This document shows positions 32,933 through 41,016 of a stretch of 64,000 nucleotides of DNA, piece after piece. Made by a program: the position numbers and the translations under genes. Origin of the DNA: Epiperipatus broadwayi. Taxonomy: Eukaryota; Animalia; Onychophora. The notes below the pieces were generated by a model that was given only the letters and a program-made list of their open reading frames with translations, was not told where the DNA came from and did not search any database. Every line of letters starts with the position of its first letter. Position 1 is the stretch's first letter. The stretch covers positions 27,590,001 to 27,654,000 of the forward strand of contig JAQFVV010000001.1 in NCBI GenBank assembly GCA_028023455.1, in the 5' to 3' direction.

Positions 32933-34474
32933 TCATGATGTTCTGATGATGATGATGAGGTGTTTGTTTTCCTCCTCTGATTCTGTGGTTGTGTCAAGTG
33001 GTTTTTTATGTATAATTTTATCTTCTTTGGTTTTGATGATAGGATGATTATTGATTGAAGATTCTTTTAATAAGGAATGTTCAATAGTTTTTGATGATGA
33101 TGATATCTGTGTAAGTTTATCAGCTGGTGGTTCTTTATCGTTAATTTTATCTTGGTTAGTTTTAGTGATAGAGGGATTATTGATTGTAATTTGTTTTATT
33201 AAGGAATGTCCGATAGTTTTTGATGATGATGATATTTGTAAATGTTTTTCAGCTGGCAGTATATCATTGCTTTGTTGTTGCTTTGGAGATTTCGTACATT
33301 GATGTGGCTTTGTGATTTTAAGTCCACATTCAGTGCAAAATTTATTTGGGCAATTTTTTATTATATGAGTTCTTTCTTTGCATGAGAAACATTGAGGAGA
33401 AATACCTTTAAATGTTATAGTTAGCGGTGATGTTTCTGATGAATGTACCGTAGGAATATCTGTTGCGTTACTGTTTTTATTTAGAGTGAATGAGAACGTT
33501 GCTATATTTGTGAATAGAAGAGTCATAGCATTTTTGTTTAATTGATATTTAAAATCAGAGACGTTTCCGTATTGTTTAAGTAATAGTTGGAGATCTATTT
33601 CTGAGAAATCAATATGACATTTTTTAATTTGACCTTTTAATAAAAGAGGGCGCATAATATCGATATAGCAAATCATTTTTCCATTAAGGAATTTAATATT
33701 ATTTTTAAATATATTTTTTTGCATCTTGCTGTGAAACTCTAGGCATAAATATCTGTTGTTTGGATGGTCTAATATTTTATAAAGGTAATTCCATAGTTTC
33801 TTTTCCATTAGTAATTGATACAGTTCATCGATGGGAAGTTTTGTGAGATCACAATTACTATTTGTTACGGTTATTATGACAGATTTGTGGTTGTGAAATT
33901 TTTTGAAAGAGTTTAATAAATTTTGTGGAATGGTAGAGTGAAATTTTTCTGTATAATAGTCATATAATTCCGGAGTTATTTGTTGAGAGTTTGAGAAATC
34001 TGTCTCAATTGTTTCATTTTCATCATTTTCATTATCAAGATTAAAAGTATCTATAATATCCTCCGATGTAAGTTGAACGTTATTTACCATGCTTGCTGAG
34101 TAATCTTTAACAACTCTTGCATAAGTATTCCTGTTTGATAAATTTCCAGAATTAGACGACTTGGTTGGTGAATCATGTTTGATTTCACTTTTATTGGTGT
34201 TTTTAATTTGATTGCAGTTATTGATTTTATTATTTGTTAGATTAGGAAAATTTTTCATATTAACGTTAAGGCTTTCTCCACGTGATTGTTGTTCGGAGCT
34301 TTTTTCTTCGATTTGAAAAAGGCTTTCAGTTAGTGGCTTAATTTTATTAAATTTTTGATTATTTTTGTTACATGAATCTGGGTTAATTCCAGAATGAAAA
34401 TTGGAAGGATTGGTACTAGCTATCAAATTATCATTGATATCGTTGGATTGGTGAGGATTGCAAATTTCCTCCAT
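32933..34474 (-). CDS. ORF1p (gag-like nucleic-acid-binding protein with zinc knuckles) of element B
   Basis: Open frame (track 32933..34510 uses TTG; first ATG is at 34474). It contains CFSCKERTHIIKNC (CX2CX4HX4C) and CTECGLKITKPHQC. The core aligns gap-free with ORF1 of A. The natural C-terminus continues after a frameshift in 32695..32997 (PLKKKLKANNPSTSP vs A PVKKKMKATNTSP). Confidence 0.85.
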   Translation of the reverse strand: MEEICNPHQSNDINDNLIASTNPSNFHSGINPDSCNKNNQKFNKIKPLTESLFQIEEKSSEQQSRGESLNVNMKNFPNLTNNKINNCNQIKNTNKSEIKHDSPTKSSNSGNLSNRNTYARVVKDYSASMVNNVQLTSEDIIDTFNLDNENDENETIETDFSNSQQITPELYDYYTEKFHSTIPQNLLNSFKKFHNHKSVIITVTNSNCDLTKLPIDELYQLLMEKKLWNYLYKILDHPNNRYLCLEFHSKMQKNIFKNNIKFLNGKMICYIDIMRPLLLKGQIKKCHIDFSEIDLQLLLKQYGNVSDFKYQLNKNAMTLLFTNIATFSFTLNKNSNATDIPTVHSSETSPLTITFKGISPQCFSCKERTHIIKNCPNKFCTECGLKITKPHQCTKSPKQQQSNDILPAEKHLQISSSSKTIGHSLIKQITINNPSITKTNQDKINDKEPPADKLTQISSSSKTIEHSLLKESSINNHPIIKTKEDKIIHKKPLDTTTESEEENKHLIIIIRTS

Positions 34475-34545
34475 TATGGAAAATTTTAATGGGTTATTAA
34501 ACGACCCCAAAAAAGGTTATATTTAGGTAAGTGATATAAAAAAGG

Positions 34546-34554
34546 ACTTACCTG
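34546..34554 (-). promoter_or_regulatory. 5' splice-donor consensus CAG|GTAAGT in the 5' UTR of B
   Basis: Perfect consensus. G at 34551 is at the same offset from the 5' motif as in element A. Confidence 0.5.
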
Positions 34555-34681
34555 TTTGTTTGAAGATGTTTAATAGTACTTTATACAAGTGTTGTATCTA
34601 TAGAAGATAATAAAATAAACAGTAAACTTTAAAAAACATTGGTTTTTCTAAGAGCCAAAAAGACGTGCTTGTGAGGCAGAG

Positions 34682-38659: not shown

Positions 38660-38929
38660 GTTAGTTGATTAGGAAGTTAGAGGAATGATACAACAAGGGC
38701 CATCAGCAAATGCCAATTGTAATATTTCTTCTAAGTTATTACTTATTGCACGTGTTATACCCATCAATAGAGTGTTTTTGAGGGTTTTAAGGACCTGATT
38801 ACCAACTATGGACCGGTTATGCTCCATAGCAAGGCAAAGGAAGAAGGAGTCCAAATAAATCAAATCGGCAAGCCAATAACAGATCATTAAGAATAACTGA
38901 TTCCATAGTGATAATAAAGTTTAGAATTG

Positions 38930-39618
38930 CTAGGTTATCTGGGCAGCTACAGATGAGTCACCCTTTGAGCCTCTGGAAGCTCTCCTATGTATGTCCACGC
39001 CTTCCTTGTAGACATCAAGTTGACTAACTTCATCAGAAGATTCCTGCATTGATTTTCTAGTACAATAAGGATTTTCAGTGTTGTCATTATTAACTGGGGA
39101 TGTGTTAGTTGCCTTCATTTTTTTCTTGACTGGTGCAGAAATTACACTTTGGTTCTTATTTTTAGGGGCTTGGTTAGCCTGATCCTTGTCACAGTTTGAA
39201 TTTTCACTGGGATCGACCTTTGGAATTGCTCCATTGTTTTTATTTTTTCTCTTGTTTTTGTTAGCATTTGGAAAAGAATTACTACTTTTAGTCATTGTTG
39301 ACATGGAGTCAGCAGAAGATTCTAAATGGTTAGTGGATTCTAGTGGACTGGCCTCACTCATGGATTGCTGATCAGTATTAAATGATGTTAGCAACCCAGC
39401 ACTACTTTTCATACTTGATTGTTGATCAGTGTTAAAAGAAGGTATAGACTCTGACCTGGTTTCAAAAGTGGATTTTAGGACTGTGTTATATGTTGTAAGA
39501 GAGCTGGTATTAGTATGTGAAATCATTGCCGAGTGTTTGTGTGTATTTGGTTCTTGGGTGGTAATTTGATTTGTTTGTGATACAATACAATTACCATTAT
39601 TTTTTTGTGGGTATGTGG
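38930..39618 (-). pseudogene. Frameshifted Ser/Asn/Lys-rich C-terminal part of ORF1 of A
   Basis: The frame of ORF 38930..39526 is open upstream to ~39620 and joins ORF 39619..41019 through one frameshift. It is homologous to the tail of B. Confidence 0.7.
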
Positions 39619-41016
39619 TTAGGTGTTTTTTGCATTTATATTATTTGAGCAGCCGTGTAGCTTGGTGATTTTGAATCCACATTTGTTACAATATTTATTA
39701 GGACAGTCGTTAACCAAATGCGTTCTAAGTTTGCATTCAAAACATTGAGGTGGAATGCCCCTAAACGTTATTACCAGTGGTGATGCCTCAGTGTCATGCA
39801 TCGTAGGAATGTCGTATGGAGTAATATCTTTTTTCATAATTAAACTAAATATTGCGGTGTTAGAAAATACGGGAATAACTGCTTTTCTGTGATTAAGATA
39901 TGAGAAATTTATAACTTTGCCATAATCTTTCATTAGCAACTGTAGATCAGCTTCATTAAAATCAACATGACAATTTTTAATTTTTCCATACAAATATAGG
40001 GGGAGACTGGTGTCAATGTAACAAATTATTTTTTCCCCCAGAAATTTAATGTGTTTTCGGAAGATTTGTTGTTGAGTCCTATTGTGGAACTCCAAACAAA
40101 GGTATCTGTTGTTCGGATGCGTTAGAACTTTATATATGTATGACCACAAATTCTTATCTGTTAACATCTGGTAGAATTCATCAAAAGGAAAATGACCAAG
40201 ATTGCATTTAGAATTAGTAACCGTCATAATGACGGTTTGATTGTTTTCGAATTTTTTGAACGAGTTAAGAAGACTAGCTGGTATTGTTTCATTAAATTTG
40301 GTATTAATTTGATTGTATGCTTCAGGAGTAATATTTTGAGGCTGTTCTTCTGTAGATTCATCATCTAAACAGCAAACTTCCATTTCATCATCAAGGCCCA
40401 TCACCTCTGCCAAAGAATCAGAAGTAGTAATACCACTGGCGATAGGCGATGAAGGGGAGGACCTAATGATTCTGGCATAAGTATTACTATTTTCATTAGG
40501 TGTTCTACTGTATATTGAGTTTTGTGAAAAGTGATTATTTTCTCTATTGTTATTTTGTACTTGAAATTGTTTCGTTGTTATAGGCTCTGATTTTGATTGA
40601 CTATTTTCCTTGTTTTCTTTCACTTGATCTTGACTCGCTATTGTAAGCTCTGGATATTCATGCTTGTTGTACATGAGCCCTCCTATTTTCGCATTTGATT
40701 GTATGGAGTTTATGAATAGTGACGAATTAATAGAATTTTGAGTTGTGTTGCCTGACGCGGAAACATTTAGCGTGTTGTTTCTAGGCCCTCGTATTTCTGC
40801 ATCAGAGTCAACATTAACTTCCAAATTTTCTGTGGAAAAGAGATCACGATTATTAATTGATTTAGTTGATACAGAATACATTTGGTTACTATGAACTAAA
40901 GATTGTGAATTTTGATTAATAGTAGGATGATTTAAGGTAGGATTAGATTTGGATTTTTCAATTTGGCCATTAGAAGCCGCCATTTGTAACGTATTTGATG
41001 GATCGTTGTAATCCAT
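39619..41016 (-). CDS. ORF1p of element A (gag-like, zinc knuckles)
   Basis: Open frame (ATG at 41016, preceded by TTG at 41019). It contains CFECKLRTHLVNDC (CCHC) and CNKCGFKITKLHGC, and shares LLNSFKKF, HPNNRYLCLEFH, ICYID and SPL.ITF.GI.PQCF with B. Confidence 0.88.
   Translation of the reverse strand: MDYNDPSNTLQMAASNGQIEKSKSNPTLNHPTINQNSQSLVHSNQMYSVSTKSINNRDLFSTENLEVNVDSDAEIRGPRNNTLNVSASGNTTQNSINSSLFINSIQSNAKIGGLMYNKHEYPELTIASQDQVKENKENSQSKSEPITTKQFQVQNNNRENNHFSQNSIYSRTPNENSNTYARIIRSSPSSPIASGITTSDSLAEVMGLDDEMEVCCLDDESTEEQPQNITPEAYNQINTKFNETIPASLLNSFKKFENNQTVIMTVTNSKCNLGHFPFDEFYQMLTDKNLWSYIYKVLTHPNNRYLCLEFHNRTQQQIFRKHIKFLGEKIICYIDTSLPLYLYGKIKNCHVDFNEADLQLLMKDYGKVINFSYLNHRKAVIPVFSNTAIFSLIMKKDITPYDIPTMHDTEASPLVITFRGIPPQCFECKLRTHLVNDCPNKYCNKCGFKITKLHGCSNNINAKNT

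Follow-up and report, generated by a model that had tools for sequence, protein, structure and literature searches.

In the window, the whole 64,000-nt stretch analysed here, two dead LINE copies of related L1/Tx1-type families, elements A and B, lie head to tail on the minus strand, and the open, CpG-rich starts of their ORF1 frames were inherited from the source elements and are not specific to these copies. The full explanation that we favour, and consider probable, combines dead copies, an inherited CpG step, even decay after insertion, and a CpG-island-like 5′ domain that overlies ORF1 in the source lineages.

Two related LINE copies and their breaks

Element A is full-length; in its family, intact copies code for an ORF1 of 695 aa and an ORF2 of 1075 aa. 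Element B is a member of an ORF1-only derivative of a second family. Their parts are as follows (window coordinates, strand):

41020–41203, minus: element A 5′UTR (~185 nt), with a (GTA)n run (41204–41270; repeat scan) as its upstream boundary
39619–41019, minus: element A ORF1 core; its N-terminal part is not conserved and is followed by a conserved, putatively RRM-like region and two CCHC knuckles (39744–39649)
39626, minus: private 1-bp deletion at ORF1 +1395, by comparison with intact family members; A's ORF1 ends at 466 of 695 aa
38930–39618, minus: element A ORF1 tail, low-complexity, now out of frame, CpG-poor
35476–38668, minus: element A ORF2 remnant, with eight frameshifts, four nonsense codons and an N gap; CpG observed/expected (o/e) ~0.18
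37900–37935, no strand: 36-N assembly gap in place of 37 family bases; flanks collinear
34758–35475, minus: AT-rich stretch of ~720 bp with internal 74–106-bp repeats, in place of the 3′UTR of A's family
34511–34757, minus: (GTA)n/GCN-rich run (34691–34757) and element B 5′UTR, CpG-rich; the alignment to L033 starts at 34757
33290–34510, minus: core of element B's ORF1 (two CCHC knuckles, 33391–33296), open, 21 CpG
32560–33289, minus: tail of element B's ORF1, poor in CpG and frameshifted by three private indels
32084–32559, minus: element B's own short 3′UTR and (GTA)n tail, without ORF2, a structure common to L033 and L040

The ORF2 architecture is that of L1/Tx1-type elements, with an APE-type endonuclease followed by an RT and a C-terminal zinc-binding domain. 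Two intact relatives (L051:4-3228 and L058:2393-5674) match Exo_endo_phos, RVT_1, and zf-RVT in Pfam, A's own ORF2 pieces match RVT_1, and the nearest solved structure in the PDB is human LINE-1 ORF2p (E=1e-23); the L1/Tx1-type label, a provisional one, was taken from these ORF2 domains and best PDB matches. In ORF1, the two CCHC knuckle motifs can be read directly; ORF1 gave no Pfam match and, in a word-indexed search, no relative at E≤0.001, the Pfam match to zf-CCHC being weak (E 0.12–5). Its AF2 model is poor (pLDDT 47) and shows the strand and helix order beta-alpha-beta-beta-alpha-beta, and distant profile matches of ORF1 have RRM_1 and zf-CCHC. Homology among 30 family A copies begins 130–280 nt upstream of ORF1. 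At the other end, the family homology of A stops at 35476, ~10 codons short of the ORF2 stop, and the stretch at 34758–35475 has no homology to the 3′UTR of two intact family A elements (C6598, C824) or of A′, a paralogue of A.

Element B, L033, and L040 are 94–97% identical to one another and share ORF1, a short 3′UTR of their own, and a (GTA)n tail, without ORF2; such copies, with ORF1 and their own 3′ end at unrelated sites (n=3), are what defines an ORF1-only non-autonomous element. The flanks of L033, like those of the contig that carries A′ (C12561), are unrelated to those of the window. Both sisters of B carry nonsense codons in the ORF1 core. Changes common to the B subfamily (19 synonymous to 19 nonsynonymous, S:N, vs 8.6:27.7 expected) reflect lineage-level purifying selection on ORF1, as expected for a retroelement.

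An earlier note on this DNA had described both ORF1 frames as uninterrupted, both ORF1 tails as frameshifted and ORF2 of A as broken at least eight times, and our annotation bears this out. The frames are open for 466 aa (A) and 525 aa (B), and the tails are shifted by the 1-bp deletion at 39626 in A and by three private indels in B (~32965, 32696, and 32612). ORF2 of A contains eight frameshifting 1-bp indels (38394, 37643, 37317, 36741, 36435, 36060, 35769, and 35518), four nonsense substitutions (37861, 37584, 37272, and 35806), one in-frame 3-bp insertion, and the N gap, in which nothing large was lost and which may or may not preserve the reading frame.

That these breaks were homopolymer or other sequencing errors, as the same note had allowed, did not hold up: homopolymers of at least seven bases contain just two of the eight frameshifts, and four of the eight recur in A′, so that most are true mutations. 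An element A that is in truth intact, its ORF2 breaks being homopolymer or assembly errors, would fit the two frameshifts within runs of 7–8 identical bases, the N gap, and the A8-to-A7 change at 36741 that is also found in six unrelated copies. Against this, six frameshifts lie outside long homopolymers, four are common to a copy on another contig, A also has the four nonsense substitutions and 2.8% divergence, and at least ten copies in this assembly have an unbroken 1075-aa ORF2, so the assembly indel error rate is low; we regard an intact A as highly improbable.

A′ is a 5′-truncated paralogue of A on another contig, and C12561 is collinear with the window from 39738 to 32117. The two copies have 41 derived substitutions and four ORF2 frameshifts in common; because they are shared, these frameshifts are old, and half of the eight in A's ORF2 predate the A/A′ separation. 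A′ lacks the deletion at 39626 and has two private frameshifts of its own in 0.8 kb of ORF1 sequence. Pooled over A and A′, private frameshifts number ~1.0 for every kb of ORF1 sequence and 1.25 for every kb of ORF2.

The CpG step is inherited from the source elements

Exact counts gave 29 CpG (o/e 0.74) in the A core (39619–41019), three (0.13) in the A ORF1 tail (38930–39600), and 15 (0.18) in A's ORF2 (35500–38660), and 21 (0.86) in the B core (33290–34510) and two (0.12) in the B tail (32560–33290), close to the approximate hand counts made before (~29, ~3, and ~15 for A; ~22 and ~1 for B). The window as a whole has an o/e of 0.32 at 26.5% GC. The excess of CpG in the core over the rest is significant in both elements (Fisher tests: A, P=1.3e-6; B, P=4e-4), and because GC content is equal on either side of the step (0.33–0.37) it is not a GC effect. 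As had also been noticed, the drop comes immediately past the zinc knuckles: the last densely spaced CpGs, at 39654 in A and 33293 in B, lie at the end of the second CCHC knuckle.

The gradient is already present in the families, which the earlier note had named as counter-evidence to its reading: the family majority states (30 copies of A, 12 of B) and copies with both ORFs open have it. The family A majority state has 50 CpG in ORF1 +14 to +1514, none over the next 640 bp and then ~1 per 100 bp; that of family B has 23 in +74 to +1165 and none thereafter before +1922. The same step is present in C6598 and C824, in which both frames are open (709-codon ORF1, 1075-aa ORF2), and in L058, a member of a third family with a 722-aa ORF1 and a 1094-aa ORF2, both open. 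In these intact elements, o/e is ~1 over the first 1.3–1.5 kb of ORF1 and falls to ~0.2 in the ORF1 tail and throughout the open ORF2, and intact family A copies have 46–50 CpG in the core region where A has 29. A fourth lineage, L057, likewise has a CpG-rich ORF1 and a CpG-poor ORF2. Across all lineages examined, o/e is ~1 over the 5′UTR and the first 1.2–1.5 kb of ORF1 and ~0.1–0.3 from the knuckle end to the 3′ end. The change is sharp, falling within about 100–200 bp without a gradient, and the depletion is specific to CpG: GpC stays at ~1 throughout, and TpG/CpA o/e is 1.2–1.3 downstream vs ~1.0–1.1 in the core.

The richness of the core does not appear to stem from selection on the protein, judging from the synonymous phases in which the CpGs lie and from their differing positions between families. 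Core CpG o/e is 1.1–1.5 at codon positions 2–3 and 1.2–1.35 at positions 3–1 (ORF2: 0.3 and 0.1), and the ratio of NCG to NCA codons is 19:44 in the core vs 11:113 in ORF2, with 0 NCG vs 22 NCA codons in the intact family A ORF1 tail. The four ORF1 lineages with the CpG-rich zone are just 41–48% identical in protein, merely 1–8 of 20–47 CpG positions are in common between families, and the zone extends over the N-terminal part, where conserved residues are absent. In intact copies it spans ~1.5 kb at an o/e of 0.8–1.8 per 200 bp, beyond the length and o/e limits of the classical CpG island (>200 bp, >0.6), with a GC content of 0.30–0.41 that falls short of the classical >50%; it stands out as an island only against the surrounding DNA, with its 26% GC and o/e of 0.3.

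Even decay of the copies after insertion

After insertion, decay was even: CpGs were lost ~11 times as fast as other sites changed, at an equal rate in the core and downstream, and amino-acid change was neutral. On the terminal branches of the copy tree, CpG sites change 10.8-fold faster than non-CpG sites. In the A core, 21 of 100 CpG bases were lost by transition vs 1.8% non-CpG divergence, and ~40% of the family's core CpGs are gone. Eleven older copies keep a CpG fraction of 0.64–0.76 along the whole core and 0.79 downstream. Compared with the family majority, the A core has 20 S:21 N (15.2:24.5 and 1.3 stops expected; P=0.08), and the private changes of both cores are close to the neutral expectation (A, 5 S:9 N vs 4.4:9.2; B, 5 S:13 N vs 5.2:12.2). 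Nor does ORF1 enjoy a family-wide advantage, as the lengths of ORF1 and ORF2 account for how often each is open: whole ORF1 is open in 17 of 46 tail-selected copies and whole ORF2 in 10 of 63 RT-selected copies, the latter (16%) against 22% predicted if breaks arise uniformly at 0.47 per kb (P=0.15). Open cores are a frequent look of short stretches in a copy ~2% diverged from its family, and A and B are ordinary decaying insertions, not host-protected genes.

These data bear directly on the earlier proposal that host selection keeps the ORF1 cores of A and B open, as an L1TD1-like gene or a dominant-negative restriction factor. In its favour, both cores are open with no private indel, vs ~12 elsewhere in the two elements (P 0.002–0.07, rate-dependent), and A alone has one break in ORF1 vs 12 in ORF2 (nominal P about 0.014). 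This contrast is a residual hint in that direction, picked after the fact and unsupported by substitutions or by A′ with its two ORF1 frameshifts. Because private changes are neutral, CpGs of the A core have been lost, and the sisters of B have core stops, neither form of co-option is supported. Frameshifts have, moreover, shortened A's ORF1 by 229 aa and hit the B tail three times, and the abundance of CpG from which the proposal arose is an inherited one. A domesticated host gene is under purifying selection and free of LINE context; the cores here are neutral, frameshifted, embedded in LINE structure, and accompanied by hundreds of paralogues whose ORF1 and ORF2 are as open as their lengths predict. 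We therefore give host co-option a very low probability.

A mosaic age of A, in which an intact element would have renewed its 5′ 1.5 kb by recombination or gene conversion and so made it younger, is scarcely more plausible. At non-CpG sites the core has diverged slightly less (1.8%) than the tail (2.5%) and the ORF2 start (2.3%), and A′, being without the core, sets no limit on what happened to it before the split. However, the difference is small (25 changes observed vs ~34 expected), core CpGs were lost at least as fast as those downstream (21/100 vs 2/14), and intact copies without a mosaic history have the same step, hence no age difference is needed. The general lesson is that an open, CpG-rich ORF1 beside an ORF2 that is broken and CpG-poor is no sign of domestication, and the intact members of the family are the comparison needed first.

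Cause of the step and relation to known elements

Of the earlier idea of an active, unmethylated, CpG-island-like 5′ ~1.5 kb, one part survives for the source lineages, a CpG-island-like 5′ stretch that escapes depletion in four ORF1 lineages, with lack of germline methylation as a possible cause; the idea fails for the window copies, which are decaying. In the mechanism that we infer, a CpG-island-like 5′ domain would overlie ORF1 coding sequence and, because the 5′UTR is only ~185 nt, would probably include the internal promoter. In lineages that produce copies, this domain may be unmethylated in the germline, or may stay CpG-dense since copies that lose CpGs stop being sources, while the ORF1 tail and ORF2 would behave as a methylated gene body and drift to CpG depletion with TpG/CpA excess. 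Two observations count against this mechanism, as does a GC content of 33–37%, below the classical island limit. In the copy tree, internal branches too have an excess of CpG transitions, with a ratio of 9, or ~5 after allowing for homoplasy, vs 10.8 on terminal branches, which speaks against a simply unmethylated core. This excess indicates that CpGs mutate in sublineages; full methylation protection in every source misfits the tree, and CpG selection at the level of the element, or source turnover, is needed. In addition, the boundary falls at the same protein landmark, the knuckle end, in A, B, and the 722-aa family, also 1.4–1.55 kb from the 5′ end, and the cause may be tied to the protein domain instead of the distance from the 5′ end.

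Causes other than differential methylation would be selection against CpG in ORF2 RNA, editing by a cytidine deaminase that acts on first-strand cDNA but leaves untouched the 5′ end, which is copied last, or gene conversion in which commoner decayed 3′ fragments overwrite the 3′ parts. The internal-branch excess in the core, which a simple unmethylated core fits poorly, points their way, as do RT-containing fragments that are ~2.5 times as numerous as ORF1 fragments (candidate counts). Conversely, the step spans about 100–200 bp instead of forming a gradient, the depletion is CpG-specific with a matching TpG/CpA excess, and both the background and the dead copies decay in the manner of methylated DNA, ~11 times faster at CpG; such causes are, in our view, unlikely. 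A broader version of the favoured reading can be proposed tentatively, as a possibility we rate below an even chance: throughout a clade of at least four lineages, a CpG-island-type promoter would sit inside ORF1 coding sequence and hold o/e at ~1 via synonymous sites, with the remaining 4 kb at methylation equilibrium, in a strongly CpG-depleted, AT-rich 5.6-Gb genome. If true, transposons in a non-vertebrate would follow the vertebrate-style logic of unmethylated CpG islands as marks of active promoters, and retroelement lineages would be selected for CpG density itself. The step marks, from sequence alone, the part of these LINEs that escapes CpG decay in their lineages, and so predicts where, in a large invertebrate-like genome, the promoter lies and how the germline is methylated.

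Among known systems, LINEs of the L1/Tx1 group with an RRM and CCHC ORF1 resemble these families in the ORF2 domains and in the two knuckles, which come after a region whose distant profile matches have RRM_1 and zf-CCHC. Tx1-clade elements target microsatellites, and the LINE copies here, which sit within or adjoin (GTA)n runs, appear by analogy to resemble them. With its ORF1, own 3′UTR and tail and no ORF2, the B/L033/L040 group is similar to HAL1-type ORF1-only LINE derivatives; it differs in comprising three copies only, two of which follow members of one broken A lineage, and some B-type copies may have been copied within a larger unit. Domesticated LINE ORF1 genes (L1TD1; ZCCHC3-like) are likewise ORF1-derived RNA-binding proteins, and clusters of ZCCHC3 are among the look-alikes from a protein-atlas feature search (score 0.92). 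In contrast to them, the window copies are multi-copy, within LINE structure, frameshift-truncated, and neutral. A parallel to the step itself is the 5′ CpG island of vertebrate L1 (human 5′UTR, mouse and rat monomers, lizard L1). CpG islands that act as internal promoters at the L1 5′ end are established in mammals and lizards, and mammalian L1 5′UTRs contain 31–94 CpG (PMC5381506). The families described here similarly have ~50 CpG at the extreme 5′ end and are CpG-poor over the rest of the element, and their dead copies quickly lose the 5′ CpGs. Unlike in vertebrate L1, the 5′UTR is only ~185 nt and the zone lies over 1.2–1.5 kb of ORF1 coding sequence, at synonymous positions, with a GC content of 33–37% and not >50%, in an AT-rich (26% GC), 5.6-Gb, non-vertebrate-like host genome. 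If confirmed by a methylome, these families would join vertebrate L1 as a second, independent example of LINEs that keep a CpG-island-like domain at the 5′ end, in this instance on top of coding sequence.

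CpG distribution in the two elements and their families

The window, G000:C1:27590001-27654000 of an assembly of 5.6 Gb, has a GC content of 26.5%, a CpG observed/expected ratio (o/e) of 0.32 and a GpC ratio of about 1.2. The host genome is that of an AT-rich eukaryote with CpG depletion of the methylation type, unlike the human genome. The two decaying LINE copies A and B lie head to tail within the following landmarks:

41204-41270, 34691-34757 and 32084-32290: (GTA)n runs bounding A and B, both elements on the minus strand
34758-35475: AT-rich replacement of about 720 bp at the 3' end of A, in place of the last ~10 ORF2 codons and the family 3'UTR

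Recounting CpG dinucleotides gave 29 in the CpG-rich 5' part of ORF1 of A (the core, 39619-41019), 3 in the remaining ORF1 (the tail) and 15 in ORF2, as well as 21 in the core and 2 in the tail of B, in agreement with the approximate counts of an earlier note. That note had also placed the drop right after the zinc knuckles, and indeed the last dense CpGs (39654 in A, 33293 in B) coincide with the end of the second CCHC knuckle (39649 and 33296, respectively). The GC content is the same on either side of this step, for which Fisher P values were 1.3e-6 (A) and 4e-4 (B). Two further CpG-rich patches (o/e 0.7-1.6) are present amid the CpG-poor background of the window, at 18251-19750 and 55500-59500. 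The second encloses a plus-strand ORF of 328 aa (56378-57364). Its match to 7tm_1 is weak (E=8e-4) and does not reach the Pfam cut-off; the ORF may be an intronless receptor gene inside an unmethylated domain.

Genome searches with ORF1 of A retrieved many copies with 92-96% identity, the majority with a 709-codon open frame, and a reverse transcriptase piece of A retrieved at least ten copies with an open 1075-aa ORF2. Natural full-length copies were assembled from overlapping stretches, and both ORFs are open in C6598 and C824. The intact ORF1 of family A comprises 695 aa; the 466-aa ORF of A in the window is a truncated form that results from a private deletion of 1 bp at 39626. ORF2 carries Exo_endo_phos, RVT_1 and zf-RVT domains, with human LINE-1 ORF2p as the nearest solved structure. 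Relatives of B, itself an ORF1-only derivative of a second family, have an ORF1 of 666-669 aa. The conserved part of ORF1 spans 250 aa with 53-58% identity among four lineages and has two CCHC knuckles at its end. Searches with the ORF1 core returned nothing significant in Pfam, in the PDB sequence search or in a word-indexed protein search, and a full HMMER profile search with ORF1 gave 26 hits, all weak; distant profile hits carry RRM_1 and zf-CCHC. ORF1 look-alikes in the protein atlas were largely cnidarian, and an AF2 model of ORF1 based on six aligned sequences scored poorly (pLDDT 47).

The CpG step is a property of these families. Across 30 A copies, the majority state has 50 CpGs at +14 to +1514 of ORF1, followed by 640 bp without any and then by roughly 1 per 100 bp. 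Likewise, o/e per 300 bp is 0.8-1.4 across the first 1.5 kb of C6598 and C824, and 0-0.5 in the tail and throughout the open ORF2. The B family has 23 CpGs from +74 to +1165 and then none until +1922, and the same step is seen in a third family, represented by a copy (L058) in which ORF1 (722 aa) and ORF2 (1094 aa) are both open. In a fourth lineage (L057, 658-aa ORF1), ORF1 is CpG-rich and ORF2 CpG-poor. This lineage additionally has a 3.3-kb CpG-rich stretch (o/e 0.4-1.4) that separates ORF1 from the start of ORF2 (L057:2630-5900; G000:C6380:1174030-1177300), in which neither a long ORF nor a tandem repeat was found. The earlier note had itself named a gradient already present in the family as evidence against its reading, and this is what the families show. 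Since intact members have the step, decay cannot be read from a CpG-poor ORF2, nor protection of this particular copy from a CpG-rich core.

Decay and selection in the inserted copies

Changes were counted against a family state, defined as the per-column majority in the LINE alignments and used for this counting only. Relative to this state, 21 of 100 core CpG bases of A are gone by transition, and sites outside CpG have diverged by 1.8% (core), 2.5% (tail) and 2.3% (start of ORF2). In eleven older copies, retention of CpGs is even across the core, at 64-76%, and amounts to 79% downstream. The rate of change at CpG sites on terminal branches is 10.8 times that at other sites. This fast and even loss suggests that inserted copies behave as methylated throughout.

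The earlier note had further offered host selection on the open ORF1 cores as one of its readings, having counted at least eight breaks in ORF2 of A. This ORF2 has eight frameshifts and four nonsense codons, and for A alone the contrast of 1 break in ORF1 vs 12 in ORF2 reaches a nominal P of ~0.014. However, pooling the private frameshifts of A and its paralogue A' gave ~1.0 per kb of ORF1 sequence vs 1.25 per kb of ORF2. Across the family, the comparison of core and ORF2 breaks relied on open-frame tallies from search tables: ORF1 is open in 17/46 tail-selected copies and ORF2 in 10/63 RT-selected copies, and a single hazard, 0.47 breaks per kb, accounts for both fractions. Changes in the core of A amounted to 20 synonymous and 21 non-synonymous (S:N), vs an expected 15.2:24.5 plus 1.3 stops (P=0.08), and private core changes numbered 5 S:9 N in A and 5 S:13 N in B. 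The 38 changes common to B and its sister copies L033 and L040 (19 S:19 N vs an expected 8.6:27.7) reflect ordinary purifying selection on a retroelement lineage. Because private changes are neutral, nonsense codons occur inside the cores of L033 and L040, and the step is inherited, co-option of the ORF1 cores by the host was rejected. Private indels are absent from both window cores, compared with ~12 elsewhere across A and B (P 0.002-0.07); this is a residual oddity, unmatched by any deficit of amino-acid changes. At 37900-37935, 36 N replace 37 bases of intact relatives. Both flanks align collinearly with the family, so the gap conceals no large deletion; the reading frame can be followed only on either side of it.

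Adjacency of A and B and other LINE copies

On contig C12561, a paralogue is collinear with window positions 39738 to 32117 (G000:C12561:1365200-1372450; L060, L050 and L040). There, the (GTA)n tail of another LINE is directly followed by A', which is 5'-truncated and starts within the first knuckle, and then by L040, a copy of the same ORF1-only type as B; the flanks are unrelated to those of the window. A shares 41 derived substitutions with A', as well as four frameshifts in ORF2, and these shared breaks thus predate their separation. The recurrence of A followed by B would reflect either copying of the two as a composite whose ORF2 is dead, by read-through retrotransposition or duplication, or an adjacency that arose twice. 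That A and B were copied as one unit is only a possibility, as the A-to-B junctions differ between the loci. The AT-rich replacement in A (34758-35475) contains (AT)n and internal repeats of 74-106 bp and resembles none of the 3'UTRs of C6598, C824 and A'. A MAFFT alignment of this end with the family 3'UTR proved spurious, with BLAST homology stopping at 35476.

Elsewhere in the genome, LINEs of different ORF1 families are often found head to tail on the same strand, 6-8 kb apart (contigs C6212, C12549, C15683, C7459 and C26), which fits insertion into each other's (GTA)n tails; C12549 and C15683 share identical stops and frame lengths and resemble duplicates of one locus. The A copies also include at least six very young ones in which ORF2 is open for exactly 742 codons; 4/6 of these have an intact 709-710-codon ORF1. 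One of them (C12745:655300-662527, L059+L021) carries 1-bp deletions at +4512 and +4900, and several are paired 6-8 kb apart on one contig (C12745, C13096, C13541). This pattern suggests that an ORF2-defective variant was amplified recently, or that the copies were duplicated in tandem.

A putative CpG-island-like 5' domain

Core CpGs occupy synonymous phases, their positions differ between families, and the CpG-rich zone includes the unconserved N-terminal part, which together excludes protein-level selection and conserved motifs as its cause. TpG and CpA are in excess in the tail and ORF2. In the simplest reading, persisting lineages have a CpG-island-like domain, ~1.4-1.55 kb from the 5' end, in which CpG depletion does not take hold. 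In this form, the promoter-like 5' end of the earlier note is retained as a putative family-level feature, but not for the window copies, which are themselves decaying. Internal branches also have an excess of CpG transitions (ratio 9, or ~5 allowing for homoplasy), and the copy tree, in which homoplasy and unpolarised deep branches blur the contrast of internal with terminal branches, does not show clean CpG protection in active lineages. Given this excess, the domain may be maintained by element-level selection for CpG density or by turnover of source copies.

In our literature search, which included PMC7140322 and PMC5381506, we met no description of a CpG step within ORF1. Vertebrate L1 elements have CpG-island promoters within their 5'UTR (PMC5381506), to which the CpG-rich domain of the families described here would be analogous. 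Unlike in vertebrate L1, the 5'UTR here is just ~185 nt long, and the domain therefore overlies the coding sequence of ORF1.
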